The notes: generated by a model from the sequence alone, not told the origin. Shown: positions 21,383 to 64,000, counted from the first letter of the stretch. The stretch is 64,000 bases of DNA from Mustelus asterias (GCF_964213995.1 NC_135806.1:139686001-139750000), one strand, 5' to 3'. Numbers and translations: made by a program.

Positions 21383-21470
21383 GTGCTGTATCACACCCCT
21401 CCCTCTCAATGTATTTGTATCATTCCCGATGGCCTGGAATTTTTCACATGCTCCTTTCCTTTAAACTCAG

Positions 21471-21557
21471 GCGGCGCTAAGTATTTTCGGGATGGTTGGT
21501 GGTCCACTGCTTGGAGTCTTTTGCCTCGGAATGTTTTTCCCCATGGCTAATTCTACG
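21471..21557 (+). CDS. slc5a6: SLC5A6 coding exon
   Basis: actcag|...|gtgagt after an 88-bp intron; [29 protein letters not shown]; 87 bp, phase 0-0. Confidence 0.95.
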
Positions 21558-21894
21558 GTGAGTTTTGCTTTTGAGTATTTCTTTCTTTCTTTGGCTACAT
21601 TTTCACGTTGGGGTGGGATCATTAACGGACTTGGTAGCAGTTTGTTTGAAGGCTTTTCCAATGAGAGGGATAACGCTGAGTAAGAGCCATCATTGCCTTG
21701 AAAAGAGTTCCTTCAGTAAGTTGTAGACCTCGATGTTTCGGGATGTGTATTCTGTCTGGGAGAATGACGGGACAGCTGAGGGATATGATTCCATCCACCC
21801 TCAACTATGTATAACTACCTCTTTCACTTGTTCCTGTCATTCCCCACCAGACAACAAGCACAGCACACTGTCAGGGCCCACCAGATCATCTAGA

Positions 21895-28855: not shown

Positions 28856-29095
28856 ATGATGTCCTGACCAATATTTAGCTCTTACTAAAAAACATTATCT
28901 GGTCAGTGTCACATTGCCACTTGTGGGATCTTGCTGTGCACAAATTGGCTGCCAGGTTAAAACTTCAATGAAAGGACGTTATTGGTTGTGGAGTGCTTTG
29001 AGTCGTCCTGAGGTGGTGACAGGCGCTGGGTAAATGCAGCTCGTCCCTGTGTAGCTGATCCAATTCGCTGCTCTAATCTTCCTTCTGTCCTTTAG

Positions 29096-29199
29096 CCCCA
29101 CAGGACTGAAGAAGTTCTACTCTCTGTCCTACCTGTGGTACAGCGGGCACAACGCAGCCACCGTGGTCATCGTGGGACTGCTGGTCAGCTTCTTAACAG
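29096..29199 (+). CDS. slc5a6: SLC5A6 coding exon
   Basis: ctttag|...|gtaagg; (S)[34 protein letters not shown]; 104 bp, phase 2-1. Confidence 0.95.
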
Positions 29200-30012
29200 G
29201 TAAGGTTCAGTGTGTCAGCGCCTTGTCCCAGTAATGTCCTGATTCAGCGACCCACCTCGAGCATGGCACTGTGGGGGTTACTTCACTGAGTGAGTAACTC
29301 GCAATGTGAGTTCAGATGGTAGTTTGTCAATTTGAATTCAGTTTCAATGGCAGGTATCAGTAAGAGTGGCCCCAGAGATTATCGTACCTGGCTCACTAAT
29401 GTTTCTTAGTGTAGGTAATCCAACCATCATTAACCGGTCCGGTCTGTAAGTCCCATGCCTGACCCTAAACTGATCTCGGACTTGGTGTCAGTTGTACCAA
29501 ACTGCTACAACACAGCAGTTCCAGAAGGTCTACCACCATCTGCTGAAGATCATGCAGAGGTGGACAGTGAATGGGTGGAACCCAAGAATGCTGAATTAGT
29601 GCAAACAAAATCCCTTCAGCTCTTTAACCAGCGGAGGAACTGTTTGTGGTCGGGGGTGGGGGGATGTTATTAACCAGAGGGCACAGCGGTTGACAAAAGA
29701 ACCAGAGGAGGAGATGAGGAGAAACATTTTAATGCAGTGAGGTGTGACTGCAATCCTGTAACAGAGTGGTCGACTCTTAACTGCCCCTGAAGTGACCAAG
29801 CAGGAGACTGTCCATATACGGTACAAAATACATACTACCTGGCAGAGTGTGTGTGTGTACCCATCTGTATTAGTGTGTGCTCGTCTGTATTAGTGTGTGT
29901 GTGTGCGTCTGTCTGTCTGTCTGTAATAGTGTGCGTCTGTGTGCGTCAGTGTCTACAACATCTTTTATAGAGAGACACTGAACTGTGTGGCTGACCTCTG
30001 TTCATATTCTAG

Positions 30013-49037: not shown

Positions 49038-50435
49038 CAAGAAGGGTAGCAGTGATAACCCAGGAAATTATAGGCCGGTGAACTTGACGTCCGTGGTAGG
49101 GAAGTTGTTGGAGAGGATTCTTAGAGACAGGATGTATGTGCATTTAGAACGGAACAATCTCATTAGTGACAGACAGCATGGTTTTGTAAGAGGGAGGTCG
49201 TGCCTTACAAATTTGGTGGAGTTTTTTGAGGAAGTGACAAAAACGGTTGACGAAGGGAGGGCCGTGGATGTTGTCTATATGGATTTCAGTAAGGCATTTG
49301 ACAAAGTCCCACATGGCAGGTTGGTTAAGAAGGTAAAGGCTCATGGGATACAAGGAGAAGTGGCTAGATGGGTGGAGAACTGGCTTGGCCATAGGAGACA
49401 GAGGGTAGTGGTCGAAGGGTCTTTTTCCGGCTGGAGGTCTGACCAGTGGTGTTCCGCAGGGCTCTGTACTGGGACCTCTGCTATTTGTGATATATATAAA
49501 TGATTTGGAAGAAGGTGTAACTGGTGTAATCAGCAAGTTTGCGGATGACACGAAGCTGGCTGGACTTGCGGATAGCGAAGAGCATTGTCGGGCAATACAG
49601 CAGGATATAGATAGGCTGGAAAATTGGGCGGAGAGGTGGCAGATGGAGTTTAATCCGGATAAATGCGAAGTGATGCATTTTGGAAGAAATAATGTAGGGA
49701 GGAGTTATACAATAAATGGCAGAGTCATCAGGAGTATAGAAACACAGAGGGATCTAGGTGTGCAAGTCCACAAATCCTTGAAGGTGGCAACACAGGTGGA
49801 GAAGGTGGTGAAGAAGGCATATGGTATGCTTGCCTTTATAGGACGGGGTATAGAGTATAAAAGCTGGAGTCTGATGATGCAGCTGTATAGAACGCTGGTT
49901 AGGCCACATTTGGAGTACTGCGTCCAGTTCTGGTCGCCGCACTACCAGAAGGACGTGGAGGCGTTAGAGTGCAGAGAAGGTTTACCAGGATGTTGCCTGG
50001 TATGGAGGGTCTTAGCTATGAGGAGAGATTGGGTAAACTGGGGTTGTTCTCCCTGGAAAGACGGAGAATGAGGGGAGATCTAATAGAGGTGTACAAGATT
50101 ATGAAGGGTATAGATAGGGTGAACGGTGGGAATCTTTTTCCGAGATCAGAAGTGACGTTCACGAGGGGTCACGGGCTCAAGGTGAGAGGGGCGAAGTATA
50201 ACTCAGATATTAGAGGGATGTTTTTTACACAGAGGGTGCTGGGGGCCTGGAATGCGCTGCCAAGTAGGGTGGTGGAGGCAGGCACGCTGACATCGTTTAA
50301 GACTTACCTGGATAGTCACATGAGCAGCCTGGGGATGGAGGGGTACAAACGATTGGTCTAGTTGGACCAAGGAGCAGCACAGGCTTGGAGGGCCGAAGGG
50401 CCTGTTTCTTGTGCTGTACTGTTCTTTGTTCTTTG
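49038..50435 (+). mobile_element. 5'-truncated CR1 LINE with two frameshifts
   Basis: RT motifs in ORFs 48973-49503, 49487-50071 and 49969-50361; gttctttg tail. Confidence 0.94.
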
Positions 50436-50736
50436 CTTGCCATCACCTTCTTAAGGAGCAACTAAGGATGGGTAATAAATGCTGGCCTAGCCCGTGACGC
50501 CCACATCGTGTGAAGGAATAAAATAAATAGCAGACAGGAGGATCATTTCATTTCCAACCAGCGACATGGTGCCCATCATATTGTTGAAGGTTAAAACAAC
50601 AAAGCAATCAGCCCTTAACCAGGGAAATAAGGACCTGGTCACCTGTTTGAAGCCCCACTTTAACACTGATTATTTAAGTGAAACTAACTCTGTGTCCCAC
50701 AAAATCAGTTCTGGAATTCATTGACCTGATTCATTG

Positions 50737-51038
50737 GGTGGCACGGTGGTACAGTAGTTAGCATGGCTGCCTCACAGCGCCAGGGACCCAGGTTCGATTC
50801 CCAGCTTGGGTCAGTGCATGTGTGGAGTCTGCACATTCTCCCCGTGGGTTTCCTCCGGGTGCTCCAGTTTCCAAAGGTGTGCGGGTTAGGTGGATTGGCC
50901 ATGCTAAATTGCCCCTTTGTGTCAGGGGGACTGGCTAGGGTAAATGCATGGGGTTGTGAGGATAGGACCTGTGTGGGATTGTGGTCGGTGCAGACTCAAT
51001 GGGCCGAATGGCCTCCTTCTGCACTGCAGGATTCTATG
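50737..51038 (+). mobile_element. SINE type A
   Basis: A and B boxes, core and CR1-type tail. Confidence 0.85.
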
Positions 51039-51409
51039 AAAGTGGTGCCAGTTGATTAAGGAGGTTCATTCCACATTACCCGCTCCCTCTGCATTTACCC
51101 TCCCGAATTTCCCCGCTTCCTGCATCCCTCCATCCCACAATTCCATTTCCCTACCTGCCACATTCCAATGCTCACATTCTTCTCCCCCATTCCTCCTGCA
51201 TCCCCCTCCTTCCACATTCCCAGTCTCAAGTCATTCCACCTCCCCCTCATTTCCATCAACGCCCCCTCTCCCGCCCCTATCCACCTCCTCCCGCATTCCC
51301 ACTGCAAATCCCCCTCAGTTTAAATTTCCCAGACCGGACTGGGGATTGGCTCCGAATGCTCACATGGGGCAACTGATCGACAAGTGGGAGAGAGCCAGAA
51401 CTTCCGTCA

Positions 51410-51815
51410 CCAGTGGAAAAATACTGGAATGTGGGAGAAAATTCCAGGAAAGTGAGAGAAAACCTCGGGAATGTGAGATAAAATACCAGGAATGTGAGGG
51501 AAAACATCAGGAATTTGGGACAACCCTGGGAATGGGAGAGAAAACACCGGGAATGGGAAATGCCAGGAATGTGAGAAAATACCGAGGACATGAGTGAAAG
51601 TGCTATAAATGGAGGAAAATACTGGAAATGGGAGAGAAAAGATTGGGAATGTGAAAGAAGATACCAGGGAAGAGATAAAATAGCAGGAATGGGAGAGAAA
51701 ACACTGAGAATTACTGCTCAAATACTGAGAAAATGAGTGAAATGCTGGAAAAAGGAGAGAAAACACTAGGGATGGGAATGCAAACATTGGGAATTTGAGA
51801 ATGCTGGGAATTGGT
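51410..51815 (+). repeat. Degenerate purine-rich tandem repeat, unit about 21 bp
   Basis: ggaatgtgagagaaaacacca-like units. Confidence 0.7.
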
Positions 51816-51934
51816 GGTTTAAACTTGTCCTACTCACAGTCACATGAGCTCTCCCACTATTTACAGTATTAAGAAAACATTATAAAGAGAGTGTTTATAC
51901 AGCCTTATAGTGAGAATAGTCAAATTCCTTTCAG

Positions 51935-52700
51935 AGTATTGCATTTTGGAAGGTCTAATACAGATAGGAAATATACAGTAAATGGCAGAACCCTTAAGAG
52001 TATTGATAGGCAAAGGGATCTGGGTGTACAGGTACACAGGTCACTGAAAGTGGCAACGCAGGTGGAGAAGGTAGTCAAGAAGGCATACGGCATGCTTGCC
52101 TTCATCAGCCGGGGCATTGAGATTAAAAATTGGCAGGTCATGCTCCAGCTGTATAGAACCTTAGTTAGGCCGCACTTGGAATATAGTGTTCAATTCTGGT
52201 CGCCACACTACCAAAAGGGTATGGAGGCTTTGGAGAGGGTACAGAAAAGATTTACCAGGATGTTGCCTGGTATGGAGGGCATTAGCTATGAGGAGAGGTC
52301 GGAGAAACTTGGTTTGTTATCACTGGAACGACGGAAGTTGAGGGGCGACCTGATAGAAGTCTACAAGATTATGAGAGGCATGGACAGAGTGGATAGTCAG
52401 AAGCTTTTTCCCAGGGTGGAAGAGTCAATTACTCGGGGGCACAGGTTTAAGGAGATGTACGAGGCAGATTTTTTACACAGAGAGTAGTGGGTGCCTGGAA
52501 CTCATTGCCGGGGGAGGTAGTGGAAGCGGATATGGTGGTGACTTTTAAGGGCGTCTTGACAAATACATGAATAGGATGGGAATAGAGGGATATGGTCCCC
52601 GGAAGGGTAGGGGGTTTTAGTTAAGTCGGGCAGCATGGTCGGTGCAGGCTTGGAGGGCCGAAGGGGCTGTTCCTGTGCTGTAATTTTCTTTGTTCTTTGC
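51935..52700 (+). mobile_element. CR1 LINE 3' fragment, same subfamily as 19215-20773
   Basis: HFGRSNTDRKYTVNGRTLKSIDRQRDLG shared; same tail. Confidence 0.92.
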
Positions 52701-53127
52701 ATTGGGGTCATGTGGACTTTGTACGATTGTATAAAATAGCCAATCAGCAGCTGCTTTATATCTTTCCCCGTTGTTATTTCAATTCCAGCCAATAGCAGAG
52801 ATTTTAATCAGGCTGTTGATTCACAATCACCCTGTCCCACCAAGACTGTAACATCACCAGTGTGATGTAGAACTGTGTCCAATGGCTGATTAACAGGAAG
52901 AATTTTGCTCTCAGAACCCAGCATAGAGTTTTAGAGGATTACAGCACATAATTACGACTGGTCCATGCCGACCATGGTGCCCTCCCAACTAGTCCCAATT
53001 GCTCGGGTTTGGCCCATAAGATCTCACAGTGAGTGATCATTAAAGCAAGTCCAGCTTACACTGCAGTTTGAGATTCAGCGCAGGGTGAGTGGGGACAGGT
53101 TTATATTGAGATTATACATTAGGCTTC

Positions 53128-53161
53128 TCAGCTTCCTGCGTTGGGTCTGTCTTGCTCCTTT
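53128..53161 (-). CDS. Candidate terminal exon (short cytoplasmic tail) of Siglec-15-like receptor
   Basis: tttgtgtttccag acceptor; read in phase 2 gives (R)KEQDRPNAGS*; no homology support; an alternative acceptor near 54625 would also give a short tail. Confidence 0.55.
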
Positions 53162-53460
53162 CTGGAAACACAAATAAAATCTATTAAAATAAGCCAAATT
53201 AACAGTAAAATAAGAGCATTTTCAGCACCTCCAGATATAACCAGCACATGTTTAAGTAGGATTCCCCACACATTTTAAAACAGATCTAATTACCAATGTG
53301 TGTGTGAAATACTGAAAGTATGTGGCTGATTGTCCCTGTTTCTGAGGACAAGTTATGCCTTTAAGTTAACAATGATGTGGATTTGCCAGCGTTGGACTGG
53401 GGTGAACACAGTAAGTAGTCTCACAACACCAGGTTAAAGTCCAACAGGTTTATTTGGTAG

Positions 53461-53495
53461 CACGAGCTTTCGGAGCGCTGCTCCTTCATCAGGTG
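53461..53495 (-). ncRNA. Minimal hammerhead ribozyme motif
   Basis: cac CUGAUGA a ggagc agc gcucc GAAA g c U C gug: intact core, 5-bp stem II, palindromic stem III, 3-bp stem I. Confidence 0.65.
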
Positions 53496-53621
53496 AGTGA
53501 AGAGTTCGGTTCACAAACAGGGCATATATAAACACAAACCCAATTCCATCGCATTCCAACCATTATCTTGTAATTGAGATTGTGTCTATATATGCCCTGT
53601 TCGTGAACCGAACTCTTCATT

Positions 53622-53656
53622 CACCTGATGAAGGGGCAACGCTCCGAAAGCTCATG
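53622..53656 (+). ncRNA. Minimal hammerhead ribozyme motif with stem I mismatch
   Basis: cac CUGAUGA a ggggc aac gcucc GAAA gc U C aug. Confidence 0.5.
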
Positions 53657-54376
53657 CTTCCAAATAAACCTGTTGGACTTTAAGTTAACAAAACATCCCA
53701 AGATGTTTCACATCAGTGTAATCTGTGCAACACAACACTGAGGCACATAAGGAGATACCGGGACAGGTGACCAAAACACTGGGATTATCTAAAGGGACAC
53801 AACCAATCAAATCCACATTCCTGCTGTTCCCAGCTGCGGGATCTTCCGTTCTCTGCCACCGTTCCCCGGCGACGGAGGGTGTGAACAATGGGAAACCCCG
53901 TTGATGGTGATGGGACTGGAAGATCTCCCGGCCTATGACGGGTCGCCTCCAACACTGTAATACATGCCGAGGGGTTGGGAGGGTGCGGGGAGGGAAATCC
54001 CGTCCATTATCAACAAAACTAAGGGTAATGTATCAATTAAATCATCATTTCTTTTGTATACAGTGCATTTTCTCTTCTTTAGCCACTCAGGATGACACTC
54101 TCAGTATCAAACAAAGTAAAACCAATTGAATTAAAGTGGATTAATCTTTATTGAAGGATACAAACATCCACCAAATTATAAATAAAGAAAGGAGACTTAT
54201 CAAACTGAGTCAGAATATTAGTACTGTGTCTCTGCTCTAGACATCAGTTACATGCAATATAAATTCGAGTGTCGGGTGAGTATAAAGCCCTCCAGTGATA
54301 TGTTTTGCTCACTGAGCAGAAACTGAAATGGACCAGCCAGATAAATACTTTGGTCACAATAGCAGATTGAAGATTA

Positions 54377-54505
54377 GGGGCAGGATTTACCGGCCGCACT
54401 CGCCCCATTGCTGGAAAATCCCGCCCGAGGTCAATGGATCTTTGCCTGGTCAGTGTCCCTCCTGCTACGATTCCCGTGGAGGGCGGGATGGGAAAATTCC
54501 ACCCC
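54377..54505. mobile_element. Short MITE-like element
   Basis: Imperfect terminal inverted repeats ggggcaggattt / aaattccacccc; no clear target-site duplication. Confidence 0.4.
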
Positions 54506-55487
54506 AGGAATTTCTTTTTGAAATTTCAAGGGATGGCGAAGACAGCATTTTTATGGCCCATCACTAATTGCCCTCGAGAAGGTAGTTGCGGACAAGCTTT
54601 GGAGAGTCAGGAGCTGGGTAAATCTCTGCAGAAAGAACTCACCCCCCCAACTCAGTATTTCACAGTAACTTCATTGCAGTGTTAACGTAAGCCCTACTTG
54701 TGACTAATAAATAAATTTTAATTTTAACTCCTCTAAGCCAGTCAACCATCTACAAATCACAAGACAGGAGTGTGATGGACAACTCTCCACTTGCCTGGAT
54801 GAGTGCAGCACTCAAGAAGTCTGAGATTATCTAGGATGAAGCGGCCAGCTTGACTGGTGCCCCATGCATCACCTTCAATTTTCACTGCCTTCACCACCAG
54901 CACAATATGGCAGCAGTGTACACCATGTACAAAATGCACTGCAGCAACGGGCCAAAGCTCCTTCGACAGACCATCCCAAATTTAAAACCTATACTATAAG
55001 AACATGGGCAGCAGACTGATGGAGCATCACCTGCGAATTTCTCTCCAAACTACACACCATTCAGGGTCAAAAACAAATCTCCCTAACAGCAGTGTACAAA
55101 TTACACTAGACCCCAGTGAATAGAGGTGGTCTGGGGGTTTTAAACAGGTCTCCAATACCTCAGCAGGTTCAGGCTGTGAGGAGCCGAATCATACAGACCA
55201 TGAAGGGATCCGTTTCAGTCCTCGATCTGGACTGTTTTAGACAATCCTAACTGGGCTGCAGTAGGGACTCTCCATTGGTCTAACTGCTACAGGAGTTGGG
55301 GATGAAATATTGCTCTGGGTTCCTGCTCCTGTTGGTATCCAGTGACCTCTGCTGGACATGTACTGTGTGACTCAATCAGAATGACCCAAATGTTTGAATC
55401 ACCTGCCAAGGCACACGGACCACAGTTCACCCATGAATCGAGCTTTAGGCATTTAAAGGCAAGAATCTTCCAGTGAAAATCCCATAC

Positions 55488-55587
55488 CTGGTTCTGTCCC
55501 TGTATAAAACGATCCACATCACGAGAAGGGGAAGGAGTTTCACTCCAAGTGGAATGCACAGTATCACGATGGGGAAAGTCTCTGCAG
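55488..55587 (-). CDS. Transmembrane exon with intramembrane Lys, Siglec-15-like receptor
   Basis: ttctgttcag|...|gtatgg; (A)AETFPIVILCIPLGVKLLPLLVMWIVLYRDRT; 100 bp, phase 1-2; LGVKLL resembles the Siglec-15 TM LGFKAL. Confidence 0.82.
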
Positions 55588-57127
55588 CTGAACAGAAAGT
55601 GAAAGAGATCAGATCAGAGACAAGAAAAGCTGAGAGACCAACAACGTAGAGACAATAATCCAAGTCTGTAAACAATTGTGGAACTCGATTGCAGATTAGA
55701 AATATTAAGTTAATGGAGCTGAACTTGGCAAAGAGCATGGACTGTGGATGAAAAACAACAAATAGACAGTATCAATAATCATAGAATCCCTACAGTGCAG
55801 AAGAGGGCTATTCGGCCCATTGAGTTTGCACCGAGTCTCTTAACCAGGCCCTCTCCCCCACCGATTGGTGGGGGAAGGGAAGGGGGCCCACTGCCACTTT
55901 GCAGCTATGATCAGTGGGGGAACACAATCTGTCTGGGTGGTGGGGACGATATTTTTGGGCATTGTGGGGCTCACGATCAGTCGCGGACCACCACAATAAT
56001 GTCGGGAGAGGCTGGGTTGAGGCTAGCTGCAACGGCAGAGGCCTGACAGCTTTCCCTTTGTCTATTGCAAACCCGCAATAGTTCCCTCTGCTGCTAGAGC
56101 AAGCTGGCTGGTGAATTAATCCCCACCCACTGCCTCTAGTAGCTAGAAACAGTCTAACCTATTTTTCACGCACTAAGTGCATAAGATTAGGAGTAATGTT
56201 CACCCAAAAATCGGATCTGTAACTCTCCCATTTTAATGCTAGCTGGCCACTTAGAATTTTTCTCCTAAAATTCCACCCATAGTCAAAGCGAGATTGGTTG
56301 ACTCACAGTGGTGACTGACATCTGGGTGGGGTGCTGAAAAATCCTTGGGCTCTGTCTTGGTCAAATTTGCCATATAGGGTGCAGTGTGCTGTGTCTGACC
56401 ACAGTTCGCCTGTTAATTCACATATACCTGATATTAACCCTGAATGTTAGAGAATAAGATGGGCGTTATAAATGTTATTTTTTCTTTCTGACATAGTTGA
56501 GGTTAAAAGCCTGCTTGTTACCAGCCTGCTGGTGTTTATCTGTCGGTGTGTATACGTGTGCTATGAGAAAAAGCAGCTGGAGGGTTTCCACACAAAACAT
56601 GTCTGATACAGTAACTGAGACAGGAAAATAGCCTTCTGCACCAATATCTTGAAACTCTCTCTCTGACTGTGGAAGTTAATCAGCCAGAAGGATTGCAGCT
56701 GGAAAAAGAATTGAAATCTCCCTACCAACCCACAGAACATCTGAATTGAAGAGTCAACTACATGCCTGCAGAGGCCAACAATACTGGAATCAATCCATAA
56801 CGTCCGCAATGCTCATCTGTTCCTTGCATGTCAAGGACTATTCTGTATAACGTTTTATTTATATTTCCTTACTATTGGACACAAATCTTACTTCTAATTT
56901 GTATGAATGCAGATGCATGTGTTTTACCATTTCTCCTGACTATTTTAATAGTTAATTTTAACTCAAGAAAGCCTGGTTAATTTGGCTCAATTTTAAACAT
57001 AGTTATTGGGTCTAGAAAAGGTTTCCAAGGGAAAGGAAACATTGTTTGATTAAACCTTTGTTGCTGCCAGCACAGGGTGAATTGAATAAAAACACTGTCA
57101 GTCACCCCTTGCCACAGGTTTGTAACA

Positions 57128-59020
57128 GAGAACCATGGATGACCAGAGACATTCAGGATACAATTCGAAGGAAAAGAGAGGCTTTTAACAAATATAAGGG
57201 GAGTAAGTCTGCAGAGGCATTAGTGGAGTACAGAAGTGCAGGATGGAGCGTAAGAAATCAAGTAGGAGAGCAAAGAGGGGATATGAGAAAGCTCTAGCTG
57301 ATAAAAGCAGGAAAAATTCTAATATATTCTGTAAGTATATCAATGGGAAGAGGATAACCAGGGAAAGAATAGGACCCATTAAGGATCAAGGGGGAAATCT
57401 GTGGGTGGAGGCAGAGGACATTGGTTGGGTGTTAAATGAATATTTCATAACAGTCTTCACCCATGAGAATGAGGAGGCAGTTATGGAACTCGGGGAGAGA
57501 GACTGTGAGGCTCTAGAGAAAATTATCATAGGGAGTGGCAAGGTATTGGAGGGCTTAAAAGTGGAGAAATCTTCAGGTCCGGATGAATTGTGTCCCAAGC
57601 TGTTGTGGGAGGCAAGGAAGGAAATTGCAGGGGCTCTGACCCAAATTTTTAATTCCTCCCTGGCCACTGGTGAGGTGCCAGAGGACTGGAGAACAGCTAA
57701 TATTTAAGAAAGGTTGTAGAGACAAGCCTGGGAACTACAGACTAGTGACCCTCACGTCTGTGGTTGGGAAACTACTGGAGAAGATTCTAAAGGAGAGGAT
57801 CTATTTCCATTTGGAGAGGCAAGGTTTGATCAGGAATAGTCAGCATGGTTTTATCAGAGGGAAGCCATGCCTAACAAATTTGATTGAAATTTTTGAGCAT
57901 GTAACCAAGTGTGTGGATGAGGGGAGTGCGGTTGATGTAATTTACATGGATTTCAGCGAAGCCTTTGACAAAGTTCAACATGGGAGACTTATTAAAATGC
58001 ACATGGGATACAGGGTGATCTGACAAGGTGGATACACAATTGGCTTAGCAGTAGGAGACAGAGGGTGATGACAGACGACTGCTTTAGTGACTGGAGGCCA
58101 ATGACCAGTGGCGTACCACAGGGATCCGTGCTGGGCCCCCTATTGTTCGTCATTTATATAAATGACATAGATGACTATGTGAGGGTTAGGATCTGTAAGT
58201 TTGCCGATGACACAAAGATTGGCCAGGTGGTTTACAGTGAGGTTGAGTGTCTTGGGTTACAGGAAGATATAGACAAGATGGTCAAATGGGCGGATAAGTG
58301 GCAGATGGAATTTAACCCTGAAAAGTGGGAGGTGATGCACTTTGGAAGGAGTAATTTGACAAGAATTATGCTATGAAAGGTCTGACACTGGGAGGTTCCG
58401 AAGAACAAAGGGGCCTCTCCCAACTCCCCCTCTCCCCCCATAGATCTCTGAAGGTGGAAAGGCAGGTTAATAGGGTGGCGAAAAAGGCAAATGACACACT
58501 CACCTTTATCAATCGGGGTATAGATTACAAAAGCAGAGAGGTCGTGGTGGAGTTGTATAGAACTTTGGTGAGGCCACAGCTGGAGCACTGGGTGCAGTTC
58601 TGGTCGCCACATTATAGGAAGGATGTGATCGCACTGGAGGGGACGTAGAGGAGATTCACCAGGATGCTGCCTGGGATGGAACATTTTAGTTATAAAGAGA
58701 AGTTGGATAGGCTTGGGTTGTTTTCGTTGGAGCAGAGAAGACTAAGGGGCAACCTGATCAAGGTGTACAAGATTATGAGGGGCATGGACAGGGTGGATAG
58801 GGAGCAGCTGTTCCCCTTAGTTGAAGGGTCAGTTACGAGAGGGACACAAGTTAAAAGTGAAGGCTAGGAGGTTTGAGGAATAACATTTTTACCCAGAGGG
58901 TGGTTACAGTCTGGAATGCGCTGCCTGGGAGGGTGGTGGAGGCGAGATGTCTCACCTGGATGAGTACTTAACACACCATAACATTCAAGGCTGTAGACCA
59001 AGTGCTGGCAAGTGGGATTA
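57128..59020 (+). mobile_element. 5'-truncated degenerate CR1 LINE
   Basis: PWMT, PGNYRLV, QGSVLGP and FADD motifs with multiple frameshifts; lies in the V-TM intron of the receptor gene. Confidence 0.92.
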
Positions 59021-59562
59021 GAGTTTTTTTTATCTCAGAGGGTCCTGAGTCTATAGAATTCTCTTCAGAGAGTGATGGAGGGTGAGTCATTGCATATTTT
59101 TCAAGTTAGCACCACAAGGGCCAAAATCAGATGACCCTCAATCATATTGAATGATAGAGCAGGTTCAAGGGGATGGATGGCTGACTCCTGCTTCTAATTT
59201 GTATGTATTATATTGGCCACAATGTCAGCGATAACTCCCATTCTCTTCCTCAAGATAGTGCTTCCTCAAGATAGAATCTGCTACATGCATCTCAGAAGAT
59301 AGCAAGGGCCTCCATTTAATAACACTTCTGAATGATGCCAACTCCAACAGTGCAGCACTCCCTCAGTAGTAGACTGGAATGTCAGTCTTACCTCCTACTC
59401 TCTGTTTGCGCCCAAATCTCTGCAGTGGGATTGAACCCATGGCTTTCTGATTCAGAGTGCGAGCGTTACCAATTGATGCACAGCAGCTGACAACTTGTCA
59501 TTACCAGCCGCCATTACTGTTACACTCTCTATTCACTGGAGAATGCAGCAATGATTTCTTAC

Positions 59563-59910
59563 CACGTGTGACCTGCAGACGTGTCTCATTCAGGATCAGA
59601 TGATGAGAATTGGACGATGTGTACTCCACCAGACACAGGTAAGTGTAATCGTCATTCACACTCAACTGGTTTATCCTAATTGAGGCATTTCCCTCATTTA
59701 GATTCCCAATGAACTCGTATCGATTTCCACCATTTACAGTTGTCCATGATCCATCTGATTGGACTCTAAATGTGACCACGTGTTGGTAGGGCTCCTTCCT
59801 CATCCAGCTAACAGTGGTCATGGAGTAGTTGCTGTGGGGTGTGAACATACAGGGCAATGTAACCGAAGCTCCCTCAGTCCCATTCACCACGAGGTCATTT
59901 CCACTCGCAT
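59563..59910 (-). CDS. Ig V-set exon of Siglec-15-like receptor
   Basis: ctttcctcag|...|gtaaga; 348 bp, phase 1-1; VTLPCMF, SWMRKEPY, RYEFIGN, ASIRI, DDYTYLCLVEY and RLQVT parallel Siglec-15 VLPCTF, IWRAGEPY, RFRLLGN, LSLRV, DDRRYFCRVEF and RLHVT. Confidence 0.9.
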
Positions 59911-60275
59911 CTGAGGAAAGGACAAACAACAGAATGATCAATGTCTGGATGATGTCCTGATTCCATTAGAGGTTGTTAACATTTCAAATAAGATCCCAAT
60001 ACCTTGTTTTAACCAATCAAACTACGCCACAAGATTTAGCGAATAACTTAACAATATGGTTTATAACTAGAGACATTATGCACTCAGGTTTACTTCATAC
60101 TTTCCCCAAGAATTCTCTTATAAGACACATCAATCTTGGAGTCATTAATTTCTGTGGGGACCATCCAAAAGGATGCCACATTCCTCCAAAAAGTTCTCTT
60201 CAGCTCCAGCTATTCTTAGAGGCAAATCTTTCTCTTACCCTTTTCTTAATTGTGGAGATCTCAGCCCCTAAGGCA

Positions 60276-60585
60276 TGACGGTGGCACAGTGGTTAGCACT
60301 ACTGCCTCACTGCACCAGGAAACTGGGTTTGATTCCCGGTTCGGGTCACTGTCTGTGCGGAGTCTGCACGTTCTCCCCGTGTCTGCGTGGGTTTCCTCCG
60401 GGTGCTCCGGTTTCCTTCCACAGTCCGAAAGACATGCTGGTCAGGGTGAATTGGCCGTGCTAAAATTCTCCCTCAGCGCACCCGAACAGGCACCGGTGTG
60501 TGGCGACTAGGGGATTTTCACAGTAACTTCATTGCAGTGTTAATGTAAGCCTTACTTGTGACCTCAATAAATAAACTTTAAAAAC
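60276..60585 (+). mobile_element. SINE type B
   Basis: Head, core and tail. Confidence 0.85.
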
Positions 60586-61429
60586 TTGTTGTGTTACTTC
60601 TCCAACATTCCCAAGCTAATTTGCTGGTTACTTTCTTTTGCAATAAGAGACTGAGAACAACAGTAGATTCTCCCACAAACTCCAAACTCGCAGCTCCTCA
60701 TCAGATTCAAACTGAGAATAAGTCACACGTGCTTTCCAAGTGATCAATAATGAAGTTAATGGTTGGGATTCTCCCAGCCGCTGCGCTGCTTGAGCAGCGC
60801 AGCAGGCCGGGAAACACCAGCGGCAGCCATTTCGTGGGATTCACGCTGGGCCCGCGGGCCTCTGCGCGTTGCCCAGGCTACGTTTTTTAGCGTCATCAGC
60901 TCCATGCCAGAAATCGCTCCGGAGCAGATTAGCATATTGAAATCTGAATTTCAATATGATTAGCGAGCCCAGGACAGTATTCTCCGGACTCGCTAGCATC
61001 TGCCCCGCCACCGGGAGTGGTTCCTTCCAGTGGTGTTTACAACTGCTTCCCACTAACAGGGAACAGGCGCCCGACTCCACTGGATAGAACAGAGACCATT
61101 GAGGCCCCCCAGGGAGGTCGGGGTAAGGTGGGGTGCCCCTTGGGCAGCTTGACACTCTGGCACTGCCCAAGGAACAAACTCGCACTGCCCACTGGGCAAC
61201 TGGCAGTGCCAAGGAGGCAGGATCAGAAGGGGCAGGGCATTCTGGGGGGAGGGGAGAGCCGCTCGCTGCTAGTCTGCAAGAGAATCGGTGGGGGAGGGAG
61301 GAAGTGAGGGCTATCGGGGTTGACCATTGGGCTGGAGGGGAGGGGGAGGGGGAGGGGGAGGGGCTACCACACTAGCATGTGGCATAGGGAGTAATCCAGA
61401 GGTGAGGGGAGAGGAGGAGGGGAGTGTGG

Positions 61430-62099
61430 GGATGTGTCCCCTCCCCTCCCCCTCTCTCTCCTCCCCCTCCCTCCTTCCCCGTGCCTTCTCTCTCCCCTCC
61501 CCCTCTCCCCCACCCCTTCCCCTCCCTCTCTCCCCCACCCCTTCCCCTCCCTCTCTCCCCCACCCCTTCCCCTCCCTCTCTCCCCCAACCCTTCCCCTCC
61601 CTCTCTCCCCCACCCCTTCCCCTCCCTCTCTCCCCCACCCCTTCCCCTCCCTCTCCCCCACCCCTCCCCCTCCCTCTCTCCCCCACCCCTCCCCCTCCCT
61701 CTCTCCCCCACCCTCTCTCCCCCACCCCTCCCCCTCCCTCTCTCCCCCACCCCTCCCCCTCCCTCTCTCCCCCACCTCTCCCCCTCCCTCTCCCCCCTCC
61801 CTCTCCCCCCCACCCCTCCCCCTCCCTCTCCCCCCCACCCCTCCCCCTCCCTCTCCCCCCCACCCCTCCCCCTCCCTCTCCCCCCCACCCCTCCCCCTCC
61901 CTCTCTCCCCCACCCCTCCCCCTCCCTCTCTCCCCCACCCCTCCCCCTCCCTGCTCTAACCCTGCTCTAACCCTCCCCCCTGCTCTCCCCCTCCCCTTCC
62001 CCTCGCTCCCTCCCACTCTCCCCTCCCTGCTCTCCCCATTCCCCTCTTCCCCTCCCTGCACTAACCCTCCGTGCTTTGGCCCCTCCCCCTGCTCCCCCC
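61430..62099 (+). repeat. Polypyrimidine/polypurine minisatellite, unit about 25 bp
   Basis: ccccacccctccccctccctctct-like units running into the gap. Confidence 0.9.
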
Positions 62100-62299
62100 N
62101 NNNNNNNNNNNNNNNNNNNNNNNNNNNNNNNNNNNNNNNNNNNNNNNNNNNNNNNNNNNNNNNNNNNNNNNNNNNNNNNNNNNNNNNNNNNNNNNNNNNN
62201 NNNNNNNNNNNNNNNNNNNNNNNNNNNNNNNNNNNNNNNNNNNNNNNNNNNNNNNNNNNNNNNNNNNNNNNNNNNNNNNNNNNNNNNNNNNNNNNNNNN
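62100..62299. other. Assembly gap (200 N)
   Basis: Run of N. Confidence 1.
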
Positions 62300-62844
62300 C
62301 ACAACATCCGCTACTGTCATTGACCAATCATTCAGAGAATGTTCTGTGGAGAGAGAGAGAGAGAGAGAATATTAAACCAGCGCAGGGACAGACATCAGTG
62401 TTTCAATATCAAACTGCCAGTCTCAGCGGTGAGGTGGATTCTTCCAACACACCACGGGGGAAAGGTTACAATAGTTTATTCATGATTCGTATCGGGATTG
62501 CCCCAGAGATTGCCCCACCTTCCTCTGATACAGCTCTAACACAGCATGCTAATCACAGGGAGAACATTCTAATGCAACTCTCTGCTCCAAGTCACAGATA
62601 CAAATTGCTTATACAATTAGTCAGTACAACGAACATTTTTTGTTTTAAAATTTCAATCTTGCTTACAAAGGTGTATTATTAACCCTTCACCCAAAAGCGT
62701 GTCCGCAGTTTTCTAACTGGTAAATGTCTGTTTCTCCTAACCAGTTTCTCCTCACCTTGCTGACAAGTTCTGCTGGTATCAGTTAGGACCTTGAGGTATA
62801 AGCATTTGTCTAACATGTGATTTTACTCTAAATGTTTACTCTAA

Positions 62845-63112
62845 ATAGCTGTTCTGTCTGGAGACAATACACATCTCTTTAACCTGTGTTGAATGCTCCC
62901 ACCACCCACATTGTCTGTACATTTAAGACCTGGCTGGCTGTAGAGATTTGCATTCTAATCAGTATTCTGTAATTTGATTTCTGTCTCTGTATGCCCTGTT
63001 TGAGAACAGATATCCACTCCATCTGACGAAGGAGCTGTGCTCCGAAAGCTTATGGTATTTGCTACCAAATAAACCTGTTGGACTTTAACCTGGTGTTGTG
63101 AGACTTCTTACT
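62845..63112 (+). mobile_element. Penelope-like 3' terminal fragment
   Basis: Shares the atgccctgtt...ctga.gaaggagc...gctccgaaagct...aaataaacctgttggactttaa tail with 53375-53683. Confidence 0.7.
63019..63055 (+). ncRNA. Minimal hammerhead ribozyme motif
   Basis: ccau CUGACGA a ggagc ugu gcucc GAAA g c U U augg: intact core, 4-bp stem I, AAGCUU palindrome. Confidence 0.65.
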
Positions 63113-63712
63113 GATTTTACTCTAATGCAGGGGTCTTACAACCATTCCCCTATACTAAACATGTTAATTTAACTCTTACACTCAATATACTGAGTCTGTC
63201 ATTGAGTGAACATAGGTCTTTCACAGTCAGATTTGAGATAGTTTGCAGACTGACATTGGGCAATATGGAGTGAGTTACAGGCTGGAATCCAATTGAAGGG
63301 TTTCAGAGTCCAATCTTGATGCAGCAACAGTGCAAACTTCCTCTTCAGAAACAATGTTGAAACTTTGGTGAAAATTGGAAAATCTCTCCCTCAAATGCTG
63401 TGGGGTCAATTGAGAATCTCAGAATTGAGATGGATTGTTTTCTGTTTGGTAAGGATATGAGAGATGTGGGACCAAGGCAAGTCAATGGAATTAGGATACT
63501 AATCAGCCTTGATCACATTGAATCTGAGCACAGGCTGGAGAGCCTGAATGTTTCATGTTCTTTGTACCTTGCTGGAAACCTGACAATCTTTCTCTACTCT
63601 GTTCCTCAAACTCTGCATTAGACATTCACCCACTCTCAACCCTACAGCGAAGTAGTAAAAAGGACAATTTAGGCAACAAGATAAATTTGATTAATTATTA
63701 AAAAGCACCTAC

Positions 63713-63773
63713 TGAGACCCCGTACTGAGACCGACAGCAAGACAGTGGAAAGCCAAACGTAAACAGAACCCAT
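63713..63773 (-). CDS. Signal-peptide exon of Siglec-15-like single-Ig receptor
   Basis: gagATGG Kozak context; MGSVYVWLSTVLLSVSVRGL plus 1 nt, then gtaggt donor; the phase-1 end matches the V exon. Confidence 0.75.
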
Positions 63774-63841
63774 CTCCAATTCTTCAGTGTTTTGTCTTTC
63801 TCACTCAGAGGTCCTTGTCTTTTGACACCAAAATACAGAAG

Positions 63842-63923
63842 TTGCTCAAAATGTTTCTTCACTTCTCGTGAAATCACCCAAAACTGATAAAAATCTCTCT
63901 AAATCTACTGTCTAACAGGAAGT
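63842..63923 (-). promoter_or_regulatory. Putative proximal promoter motifs of the Siglec-15-like gene
   Basis: TTGCTCAA (C/EBP-like, 63842-63849), TGATAA (GATA, 63885-63890) and CAGGAAGT (ETS, 63916-63923) lie within 150 bp upstream of the ATG; motif match only. Confidence 0.3.
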
Positions 63924-64000
63924 CTGTTTAATTTTAGAAAAGTGTCAGAAAAACTCTGTCAGCAACTGTGGAGAGAGAAACAGTTTCAAGTCCTCTTCAG

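Follow-up and report, generated by a model that had tools for sequence, protein, structure and literature searches.

A probable activating member of a Siglec-15-related receptor family in the starry smooth-hound, with a V exon interrupted by an assembly gap

Does the immunoglobulin-type receptor gene in the 64,000-nucleotide stretch of Mustelus asterias DNA analyzed here (the window) encode a single-domain activating receptor, as a preliminary description proposed, or is one of its exons missing from view? The four minus-strand exons of that description were recovered at its positions, with GT-AG borders, compatible phases, lengths of 61, 348, 100, and 34 nt, and the peptides that it quoted. 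Exon 1 (63773-63713) contains the start codon and signal peptide (ATG...CA before the donor GTAGGT) and comprises 20 codons plus one base, ending in phase 1. Exon 2 (59910-59563; cctcAG before the exon, CGTG at its end, donor GTAAGA) is a phase 1-1 exon encoding a V-set domain, referred to below as V2. Exon 3 (55587-55488; ttcAG before the exon, CCAG at its end, donor GTATGG) encodes the transmembrane (TM) segment, and exon 4 (53161-53128; tccAG before the exon, TGA at its end) encodes the last 11 residues of the cytoplasmic tail, without tyrosine, and the stop codon. Their reading frame is free of stops and frameshifts, and their eight splice signals are all intact, as is the acceptor of a further exon described below. 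LINE/RT fragments fill the introns of the locus. The gene lies tail-to-tail with slc5a6, as previously stated, which we take not to be the neighborhood of mammalian SIGLEC15. NCBI names the locus Siglec-15, and its model (P0001) matches exons 2-4 residue for residue; the gene can therefore not be called hidden among repeats.

The TM and tail exons identify a gene for a type I immunoglobulin receptor that has a TM lysine and a short, tyrosine-free tail, in agreement with the preliminary description. The lysine lies in the context ILCIPLGVKLLPLLVMW (the TM segment is also given as CIPLGVKLLPLLVMW), and the whole cytoplasmic tail has 21 residues and lacks a signalling motif of its own. At 27 of 34 positions, the peptide of exon 3 matches the TM segment of P0170 from Heterodontus, which belongs to a different shark order, and it aligns around LG[VI]KLL with the TM segment of a lungfish protein named Siglec-15 (P0033, E 2e-4) and with that of whale shark P0075 (E 7e-4). 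Narcine P0017 and catshark P0168 have tails resembling the last exon (RKEEDRSITGS, RKDQDRHIAG..), and the signal peptide of exon 1 is 15/20 identical to that of a Mustelus paralog, P0004, and 16/19 to that of P0170. The exon peptides show no stalk rich in Ser, Thr, and Pro between V2 and the TM segment.

The V2 exon encodes a V-set domain far above chance (Pfam PF07686, E 6.8e-16, 58.9 bits, cut-off 26). Its W..EPY and DD..Y.C motifs align with human Siglec-15 (chain 7zoz_A, 37.9-39.1 bits), which, together with the lungfish TM alignment and the NCBI name, upholds the description of the locus as Siglec-15-like. In the 7zoz_A alignment, V2 has Leu opposite the sialic-acid Arg of Siglec-15 YFCRVEF and lacks the extra Cys (FRV versus FRC). 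By sequence, the solved relatives that rank first or nearly first for V2 are the V domains of CD276 (B7-H3), TIM-1, TIM-2, TIM-3, and TIM-4, with E 4.7e-11 for CD276 (the sum of two domains scoring about 21 bits apiece) and E 1.6e-9 (41.2 bits) for TIM-2. Identity to the V2 domains of other sharks is 62-76%, including 69% to P0168 (Scyliorhinus torazame) and 68% to P0170 (Heterodontus francisci), with AAETFP...LGVK conserved.

A fifth exon starts on the minus strand at 62343, between exons 1 and 2. Its acceptor AG occupies 62345-62344, its phase matches the remainder of exon 1, and its start reads KHSLNDWSMTVADVV, identical at 14 of 15 positions to residues 21-35 of P0004, where its first V domain (V1) begins. 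With the base left over from exon 1, positions 62343-62300 (44 bases) translate as K+HSLNDWSMTVADVV (K+HSLN...), and the first 15 V1 codons are readable before the exon reaches its first N at 62299. The 11-residue V1 core at 62332-62300 has a tblastn E-value of 0.39 alone. What lends weight to the assignment is its strand and its placement after exon 1 and before exon 2, along with the acceptor, the matching phase, and four additional identical residues. The assembly gap, an N run at 62100-62299 of unknown true length, lies in intron 1 of the four-exon model, overlaps none of its exons, and interrupts the V1 exon. Because V1 has about 136 residues in P0004, a complete V1 exon must have its other ~360 bases inside the gap; that remainder may be absent or broken, which would count against the five-exon gene favored below. 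On the other side of the gap, from 62099 downward, lies a C-rich 25-nt tandem array of the plus strand (61438-62099), intronic and non-coding, within which arrays were delimited at 61438-61951 and 61494-62037 (about 20 copies, GC 0.70-0.755, GC skew down to -1.0). This array, which adjoins the gap, is the likely cause of the assembly break. In tblastn searches of the whole window, no other piece of V1 was found, nor was a C2 exon (queries: the C2-bearing P0075, P0033, P0217, and P0212). The terms "four exons" and "single domain" are not upheld, as the exon 1 to exon 2 splice skips the visible start of V1; both the earlier model and the NCBI model probably look single-domain because the assembly gap breaks the V1 exon.

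The two sides of the gap were joined by scaffolding, and the piece at 62300-64000 could derive from another copy. If so, the signal and V1 start would belong to a neighboring paralog, and V2, TM, and tail would have their own 5' exons elsewhere. The position of the join beside a tandem array is in keeping with such an artefact, as are the 23-residue exon outside the window with which P0001 starts, skipping exon 1 and V1, and the existence of a multi-copy family on the same chromosome, with copies 95-96% alike in the sequencing runs X3 and X4. However, the strand and order of the signal, V1 start, V2, TM, and tail match the gene structure of the family exactly, and the first exon of P0001 encodes no signal peptide. 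We regard a scaffolding artefact as highly improbable.

Relatives of the locus were found in 20 shark and ray species, with the architecture signal-V1-V2-TM. Among 217 collected proteins, 60 score as V1-V2 and 6 more as V1-V2-V1-V2. The family has two TM/tail types, as read by eye from the TM strings of 58 proteins, truncated models included: a ..PLGxK.. TM with a short tail (20 of 58), and a purely hydrophobic TM followed by a tail of ~70-130 residues with ITIM-like motifs such as VTYAAV and ILYAEI (19 of 58). The window locus, which has a V2 of the YLCLVEY type, belongs to the TM-lysine type of this elasmobranch family. Both V1 and V2 are present in 14 of 14 TM-lysine relatives, in a crude pattern classification of a set selected for matches to both domains. 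Full-length TM-lysine models with V1 and V2 come from Scyliorhinus (P0167, P0168), Heterodontus (P0170, P0177), Hemiscyllium, Chiloscyllium, Mobula, Hemitrygon, Hypanus, Rhinoraja, and Narcine. P0168, annotated as "Siglec-15 isoform X2", and P0170 share the V2, TM, and tail types of the window gene and have a complete V1 and signal peptide.

A 180-residue activating receptor with a single V domain would still be encoded here if V1 were lost or regularly skipped. Skipping V1 keeps the frame because both V exons are phase 1-1, the NCBI product P0001 is likewise single-V, and domain-skipping isoforms with only one V are annotated in relatives (P0201, P0188). Nevertheless, the V1 exon start has a good acceptor and is nearly identical to that of the paralog, the scored TM-lysine relatives all have both domains, and P0029 and P0031, two short models truncated at the N-terminus, nonetheless end in a V1 tail, which makes the four-exon gene very unlikely. 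Like TREM, PILR-beta, and CD300 receptors, the locus has a TM lysine, a short tail, and a presumed DAP12-type coupling; unlike those receptors, which have one V, it contains the start of a second V exon at 62343 and its relatives have two V domains. For this reason the TREM/PILR-beta-like architecture suggested earlier was not retained.

The domain closest to Siglec-15 in this family is V1. The best solved relative of the V1 of P0014 is human Siglec-15 (7zoz, E 3.7e-12; the next, 6e-7), and the family V1 shares the W.M, LPCTFTHP, FxC, RFRxxGN, and CRVE motifs with it. In paralogs and orthologs, V1 is thus a V-set domain of the Siglec-15 type, additional conserved cysteines included. The sialic-acid Arg is present in V1 in 8 of 14 TM-lysine forms and replaced in 5 of 14, and it is present in 16 of 18 V1 domains of ITIM forms, according to a crude classification that left 33 of 63 proteins unclassified. 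At the window locus, the corresponding V1 position falls within the N run. These results indicate that V1, whose Arg is found in paralogs, and not V2 as first supposed, would be the Siglec-15-type lectin domain.

The Mustelus paralog P0004 (XP_078071345.1, LOC144495190) is of the ITIM type and lies on the same 147,988,225-bp chromosome record as P0001. Its V2 is identical to the window V2 at 110 of 114 residues, and the proposal of a paired-receptor family with ITIM-bearing members is borne out by this paralog. At the nucleotide level, the V2 exon differs from that of the paralog at 5 of 344 bases (59647, 59693, 59696, 59814, and 59830). Logan contigs of runs X1-X4 were compared with window positions 54000-59999. 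In runs X1 and X2, RNA-type contigs stop at 59912 and 59569, near both borders of the V2 exon, and the borders were thereby confirmed by RNA contigs derived from the paralog. A spliced X2 contig carries exactly the five differences of the paralog and is therefore the mRNA of the paralog, giving no support to the window locus. In X1-X3, the TM exon has no matching contig at 95% or more, and its coverage in X4 is confined to unspliced sequence. Across 54000-59999, the contigs provided no RNA evidence for the window locus and confirmed none of its junctions.

These contigs bear on the possibility that the locus is decaying or silent, as an activating partner whose V1 was lost or whose expression has ceased. 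The uncovered TM exon is consistent with silence, given that spliced mRNA of the paralog is present in X2, and the LINE/RT-rich introns and the lack of a signal peptide in the NCBI model point in the same direction. On the other hand, the reading frames and splice signals of the locus are intact, V2 has remained almost the same as in an expressed paralog, the TM exon is conserved across shark orders, and Logan contigs lose weakly expressed transcripts, in runs of unknown tissues. Therefore, we consider a decaying or silent copy unlikely.

The domain tree comprises 71 rows and leaves out mammalian TIM, PILR, CD300, and TREM sequences. The window V2 joins the V2 of P0004 (100/99) inside a 26-row V2 clade (99/99), and the V1 clade (100/100) groups with lungfish, gar, catfish, and coelacanth proteins, three of them named Siglec-15 (98/86). 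V2 falls outside this group of V1 and bony-fish proteins named Siglec-15. The V+C2 protein P0217 of S. canicula groups with a catfish Siglec-15 (86/91, long branches), and a CD276-like row of hagfish lies inside the ingroup on a long branch. V1, V2, and the proteins named Siglec-15 form a 67-row group that excludes a frog TIM-3-like protein, the one TIM-like row, and three unnamed relatives (95/81). Membership in the TIM family was rejected on the separate position of that single row and on the lack of a mucin stalk in the window gene, which also distinguishes it from TIM proteins. The locus is likewise not the ordinary SIGLEC15 ortholog, as elasmobranchs also have distinct V+C2 forms (P0217, P0075, P0076); the position of V2 and the neighbor slc5a6 do not fit one-to-one orthology either. 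Activating and inhibitory rows interleave by species: for V1 and V2 alike, the 25 rows show 8 changes of type, compared with 1 expected from a single ancient activating/inhibitory split. Clustering of the ectodomains by species suggests gene conversion.

Taken together, we interpret the window locus as an activating, TM-lysine member of a Siglec-15-related pair or small cluster in the starry smooth-hound, with a V1 broken by the gap, and give this reading a probability of about 0.62. The true gene would most likely have five coding exons (signal, V1, V2, TM, and tail) and a two-V type I membrane product of ~315-340 residues, like its counterparts in catshark, bullhead shark, and rays. The distal V1 would be the ligand-binding domain, of the Siglec-15 type that has the sialic-acid Arg in most relatives, and V2 would form a non-lectin stalk domain. 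The intramembrane lysine may pair with an Asp in an adaptor of the DAP12 or DAP10 type, and this adaptor would supply an ITAM or YxxM signal, since the short tail has no motif. The ITIM-bearing LOC144495190 would give the opposite signal through a nearly identical ectodomain, and the ectodomain exons of both types are probably kept alike within each species by gene conversion.

Siglec-15 has been described as an activating receptor, whose TM lysine pairs with DAP10/12 and whose human R143 functions in sialic acid binding (PMC7226832). Siglec-15 of bony vertebrates (human 7ZOZ, lungfish P0033, gar P0099, catfish P0216) is likewise a type I protein whose TM contains a lysine and whose tail is short. 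However, its membrane-proximal domain is C2-set, whereas that of the window gene is V-set, with Leu for Arg and no extra Cys, and the elasmobranch family is multi-copy, includes ITIM-bearing members, co-exists with V+C2 forms, and is represented in the window beside slc5a6.

Paired activating and inhibitory receptors are known from Siglec-5/14 and Siglec-11/16 of primates. The elasmobranch family resembles them in combining near-identical ectodomains with a charged TM and short tail in some members and with an ITIM tail in others, in the clustering of ectodomains by species, and in the loss of Arg in some activating members, but it is Siglec-15-like and not of the CD33-related lineage, has a V-V architecture, and occurs in elasmobranchs. 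A broader interpretation, for which we see roughly even odds, is that the Siglec-15 lineage, elsewhere usually regarded as a conserved activating receptor, expanded in elasmobranchs into a clustered family of two-V activating (TM-lysine) and inhibitory (ITIM) receptors. In such a history, the TM/tail exons would predate the shark-ray split, gene conversion would homogenize the ectodomain exons within each species, and the sialic-acid Arg of V1 would be lost preferentially in activating members. If this is true, the Arg loss is the pattern expected of activating copies serving as decoys against pathogens that exploit inhibitory ones, and the window gene and LOC144495190 are the Mustelus pair.

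In the literature searched, we found no description of a matched activating/inhibitory Siglec-15-like family in elasmobranchs. Another cartilaginous-fish multigene family of activating and inhibitory immunoglobulin receptors, MDIR of skate, has been described as CD300/TREM/pIgR-like (PMC3031540); it shares with the V1-V2 family, in a comparison by description only, the multigene activating/inhibitory organization. Members of the V1-V2 family carry diverse automated names, including Siglec-15, -12, and -10, pIgR-like, JAM-like, A33-like, sialoadhesin-like, CD33-like, and uncharacterized.

The minus-strand gene at window positions 53128-63773 contained four exons, encoding a signal peptide (63773-63713, 61 nt), a V-set domain (59910-59563, 348 nt), a transmembrane (TM) segment (55587-55488, 100 nt), and the end of the tail (53161-53128, 34 nt), all on the minus strand. 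The exons had AG/GT borders, pyrimidine-rich acceptors, and compatible phases (1, 1, 2), and their coordinates, splice borders, phases, and peptides were all as claimed in the preliminary description, which had proposed a Siglec-15-like activating receptor with a single V domain. Exon 2 encoded a V-set Ig domain (PF07686, E 6.8e-16, 58.9 bits; cut-off 26), the exon 1 peptide was the signal peptide of the family (15/20 residues identical to P0004, an ITIM-tailed Mustelus paralog, and 16/19 to Heterodontus P0170), and exon 3 was identical to the TM segment of P0170 at 27 of 34 residues. Chance ORFs were ruled out as an explanation of the exons, the homology being far too strong. Using tblastn, no further copies of the four exon peptides were found within the window (self-matches only; next best for exon 2, E 0.20).

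The NCBI RefSeq model of the locus (P0001) holds exons 2, 3, and 4 residue for residue, and the part of the gene from the V-set domain to the tail is thus a gene model already in NCBI. This model starts with a 23-residue exon that lacks a signal peptide and is absent from the window, and it omits exon 1 and the first V domain considered below. Spliced comparison of the locus was made through P0001 itself. A word-index search with exon 2 returned three proteins among five candidates, including P0001, the NCBI name of which is common to models from two further sharks. In the last-exon region (53059-53180, minus strand), the NCBI models of different sharks use three reading frames: one in the locus, catsharks, Narcine, and Rhinoraja, a second in Cetorhinus P0003, whose TM exon is also read out of frame, and a third in Heterodontus P0170 and Heptranchias P0008 (..SKTDPTQEAEKPNV). 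This means either weak constraint on the tail or errors in some of the models.

The close relatives of the gene share a plan of signal peptide, a distal V-set domain (V1, ..Y.CRVE..), a membrane-proximal V-set domain (V2, ..YLCLVEY..), TM segment, and tail, and exon 2 is of the V2 type. An N run at 62100-62299 falls within intron 1, clear of all four exons. Just upstream of it on the gene strand, an acceptor (..tccacAG, AG at 62345-62344) opens a frame from 62343 that reaches the first N at 62299. Joined to the leftover base of exon 1, this frame encodes K and then HSLNDWSMTVADVV, with 14/15 residues identical to residues 21-35 of P0004 (KHSLNDWSMTVADEV), which follow the signal peptide of P0004 and form the start of its first V domain. 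The 11-residue core of this match is weak by tblastn alone (E 0.39). What lends the match weight is that its strand and its order between exons 1 and 2 are those expected, that it has an acceptor and the fitting phase, and that four more residues are identical. As V1 spans about 136 residues in P0004, about 360 nt of the exon would be missing at the locus, which is no contradiction, since the 200 N are a placeholder. Neither the remainder of V1 nor any C2 exon was found in the window with 14 family proteins as queries.

Full-length relatives with a TM Lys, for example catshark (Scyliorhinus) P0167 and P0168 and Heterodontus P0170, have both V1 and V2. The simplest reading is that the locus would be a signal-V1-V2-TM-tail gene whose V1 was lost in the gap, and the single-domain receptor of the preliminary description does not hold up against the V1 exon start at 62343 adjoining the gap. 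Because Ig exons are of phase 1-1, that description and the NCBI pipeline both arrived at single-domain models that are plausible but probably wrong. The practical lesson of the locus is that an Ig-domain exon was interrupted by an assembly gap lying beside a tandem array. This array, located below the gap (61438-62037), is a non-coding, C-rich (plus strand) 25-nt repeat of about 20 copies with GC up to 0.755. The surrounding region (61311-62099), which terminates at the N gap, has long ORFs rich in Gly and Pro on either strand, and these are spurious.

An exhaustive HMMER search with exon 2 retrieved 504 representatives at E<=1e-3, including 93 at <=1e-10 and 23 at <=1e-30. Among 217 stored proteins, 60 had a V1-V2 and six a V1-V2-V1-V2 architecture. 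Reading the type by eye from the printed sequences of 58 proteins, we assigned 20 to a form with a ..PLGxK.. TM segment and a short tail and 19 to a form with a purely hydrophobic TM segment, in which ITIM-like motifs lie in a tail of about 70-130 residues, and the other 19 were soluble, truncated, or unclear. The family was represented in 20 species of sharks and rays, frequently with more than one member on a chromosome record, under automated names such as uncharacterized, Siglec-15, -12, -10, pIgR-like, JAM-like, A33-like, sialoadhesin-like, and CD33-like. The V1 F-strand Arg (Y.CRVE) was retained by 16 of the 18 V1 domains found in ITIM forms (two unmatched by the pattern), and 5 of the 14 TM-Lys proteins had H, H, Y, S, or G in its place, these counts resting on crude regex classes with 33/63 proteins unclassified and on isoforms and kin that are not independent. 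At the locus, the corresponding residue falls within the gap.

The proteins of this family are already in RefSeq, and full-text searches retrieved no publication dealing with Siglec-15-like genes in either sharks or rays. Reports said to deal with Siglec-15 (Angata et al. 2007) and MDIRs (Cannon et al. 2006), as well as a 2018 review reportedly on Siglec evolution, may bear on novelty. If the reading is true, the Siglec-15 lineage is not single-copy in cartilaginous fish, which are not mentioned in the available portion of a paper on fish Siglecs (PMC7226832). Skate MDIRs are a known activating/inhibitory Ig family according to PMC3031540.

Among solved structures (1022 sequences at E<=10), the best relatives of V2 were CD276 (E 4.7e-11, from two domains scoring about 21 bits apiece), TIM-2 (E 1.6e-9, 41.2 bits), and the human Siglec-15 structure 7zoz (E 6.9e-9, 39.1 bits). 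The V-set motifs that the preliminary description took as marks of Siglec-15 were present in the alignment of V2 with 7zoz, in which Leu of YLCLVEY lies opposite Arg of YFCRVEF and V lies opposite the extra Cys after FR. According to PMC7226832, Siglec-15 is defined by a DAP10/12-binding TM Lys, R143, and conserved V-domain cysteines. For V1 of the family relative P0014, Siglec-15 led the solved structures by a clear margin (E 3.7e-12, 49 bits, with the next match at 6e-7 and 27 sequences in all at E<=1e-3), and W.M, LPCTFTHP, FxC, RFRxxGN, and RVE were common motifs. The TM segment of the locus matched those of the lungfish 'Siglec-15' P0033 (10/25, core LG[VI]KLL, E 2e-4) and whale shark P0075 (13/26, E 7e-4).

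A careful maximum-likelihood tree covered 71 domain rows, with few outgroups and without mammalian TIM, PILR, CD300, or TREM, human, mouse, or zebrafish Siglec-15, or MDIR; bridging to bony-vertebrate Siglec-15 by word-index search gave only six proteins among 39 candidates. V2 of the locus joined V2 of P0004 (100/99, starred) inside a 26-row V2 clade (99/99, starred), and all V1 domains formed another 26-row clade (100/100, starred). The V1 clade grouped with S. canicula P0217 and with proteins from lungfish, gar, coelacanth, and catfish, of which three bear the name Siglec-15 (98/86, starred). This group, the V2 clade, and an elasmobranch V+C2 clade (P0075, P0067, P0076, and P0085; 99/97, starred) met in an open polytomy. 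This phylogeny, which covers part of the one proposed in the preliminary description, sets V2 apart from a frog TIM-3-like protein, which split off with three unnamed proteins (95/81, starred), and leaves V2 in a polytomy with the Siglec-15-named group. One CD276-like row, from hagfish, was placed within the ingroup with a long branch. The reading of the gene as a TIM or CD276 relative was rejected, since these are no more than V-set matches of equal rank and the tree keeps V2 apart from the TIM-3-like row.

By sequence comparison, the locus is related to Siglec-15, but tests for a C2 domain and for orthology came out negative, in agreement with the earlier proposal that it is not the ordinary SIGLEC15 ortholog. 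Other elasmobranch genes, P0217 and those of the P0075 type, are better candidates for that ortholog. Tandem V domains of the Siglec-15 type, at least two per protein, also occur in bony-fish proteins named Siglec-15 or SIG15 (P0033 and P0023 from lungfish, P0099 from gar). The lungfish plan is V-V-C2-TM(Lys), and P0023 has seven V domains. V-domain duplication in this lineage is therefore not confined to elasmobranchs.

An ITIM-bearing counterpart, the existence of which had been raised in the preliminary description, was identified as P0004 (XP_078071345.1, LOC144495190), a protein of 409 aa that shares a 147,988,225-bp record with P0001. Its V2 is identical to that of the locus at 110 of 114 residues, and it has no TM Lys and a long tail with VTYAAV and similar motifs. 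Activating and inhibitory rows grouped by species or genus in both V1 and V2 subtrees, with eight type changes among 25 rows for each domain, against one for a single ancient split, and the TM-Lys segment is conserved between sharks and rays. This pattern is consistent with gene conversion having acted on ectodomain exons across old TM/tail types.

Four sequencing runs of one study (X1-X4), none recorded as RNA, contained exon 2, and their contigs were mapped to 54000-59999, which covers exons 2 and 3. The X1 (1164 nt) and X2 (2091 nt) contigs matched only 59569-59912 in this interval, and their remainders (820 nt in X1; 520 and 1227 nt in X2) matched nowhere in it. These contigs are spliced transcripts ending at or near both V2 exon borders. 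The X2 contig differs from the window at five positions, which account exactly for the four residues changed in P0004 and for one silent change; therefore, this contig is the mRNA of the paralog. The X1 contig, which terminates exactly at 59569, carries two of the five differences, with paralog letters at 59814 and 59830 and window letters at 59647, 59693, and 59696, and could stem from an allele of the locus, from a third copy, or from chimerism in the assembly graph. Over 59521-59891, the X3 and X4 contigs comprise the V2 exon and intron flank at 95-96% identity (17 and 12 differences), which hints at further genomic copies or divergent alleles. The TM exon was covered by no X1-X3 contig and by X4 only in unspliced form. 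The splice junctions of the locus predicted earlier were thus neither confirmed nor refuted by contigs over 54000-59999, as contigs drop rare transcripts and the junctions 63713/62343, 63713/59910, and 55488/53161 extend beyond this interval.

The locus encodes a leader, the V1 start, a V2 that lacks the lectin Arg, a Lys within the TM segment, and a tyrosine-free tail of 21 residues. From the Siglec-15 literature (PMC7226832) and knowledge of receptors with charged TM segments, V1 would be the ligand-binding domain, the TM Lys would pair with a DAP12/DAP10-type adaptor supplying the signal, and the ITIM partner with its almost identical ectodomain would give the opposing signal. If this is true, cartilaginous fish have paired activating/inhibitory Siglec-type receptors with concerted ectodomain evolution. 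The family is of moderate biological interest, and the locus and LOC144495190 provide a defined pair for comparative immunology at the base of jawed vertebrates, suited to questions of adaptor coupling and sialic-acid recognition.

Two plus-strand ORFs matched human SMVT (SLC5A6, 26va) at residues 425-483 (21465-21680, E 3.9e-11) and 495-533 (29055-29231, E 1.8e-13), and both matched the sodium-dependent multivitamin transporter more strongly than SMCT1 or NIS in the PDB sequence search. Pfam gave no match on either putative slc5a6 exon. The tail-to-tail arrangement with slc5a6 described earlier was thus borne out, with about 24 kb from the last identified slc5a6 exon to the stop codon of the receptor, and this neighbourhood presumably differs from that of mammalian SIGLEC15. 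No Rfam family matched 50000-64000 at the gathering score, so that back-to-back hammerhead motifs in the last intron (53434-53683) are not supported at this threshold. LINE-fragment reverse-transcriptase-like ORFs were located in introns and downstream of the gene (51891-52487 and 57046-58867, plus strand), and both stretches showed very high contig depth in the runs mapped.
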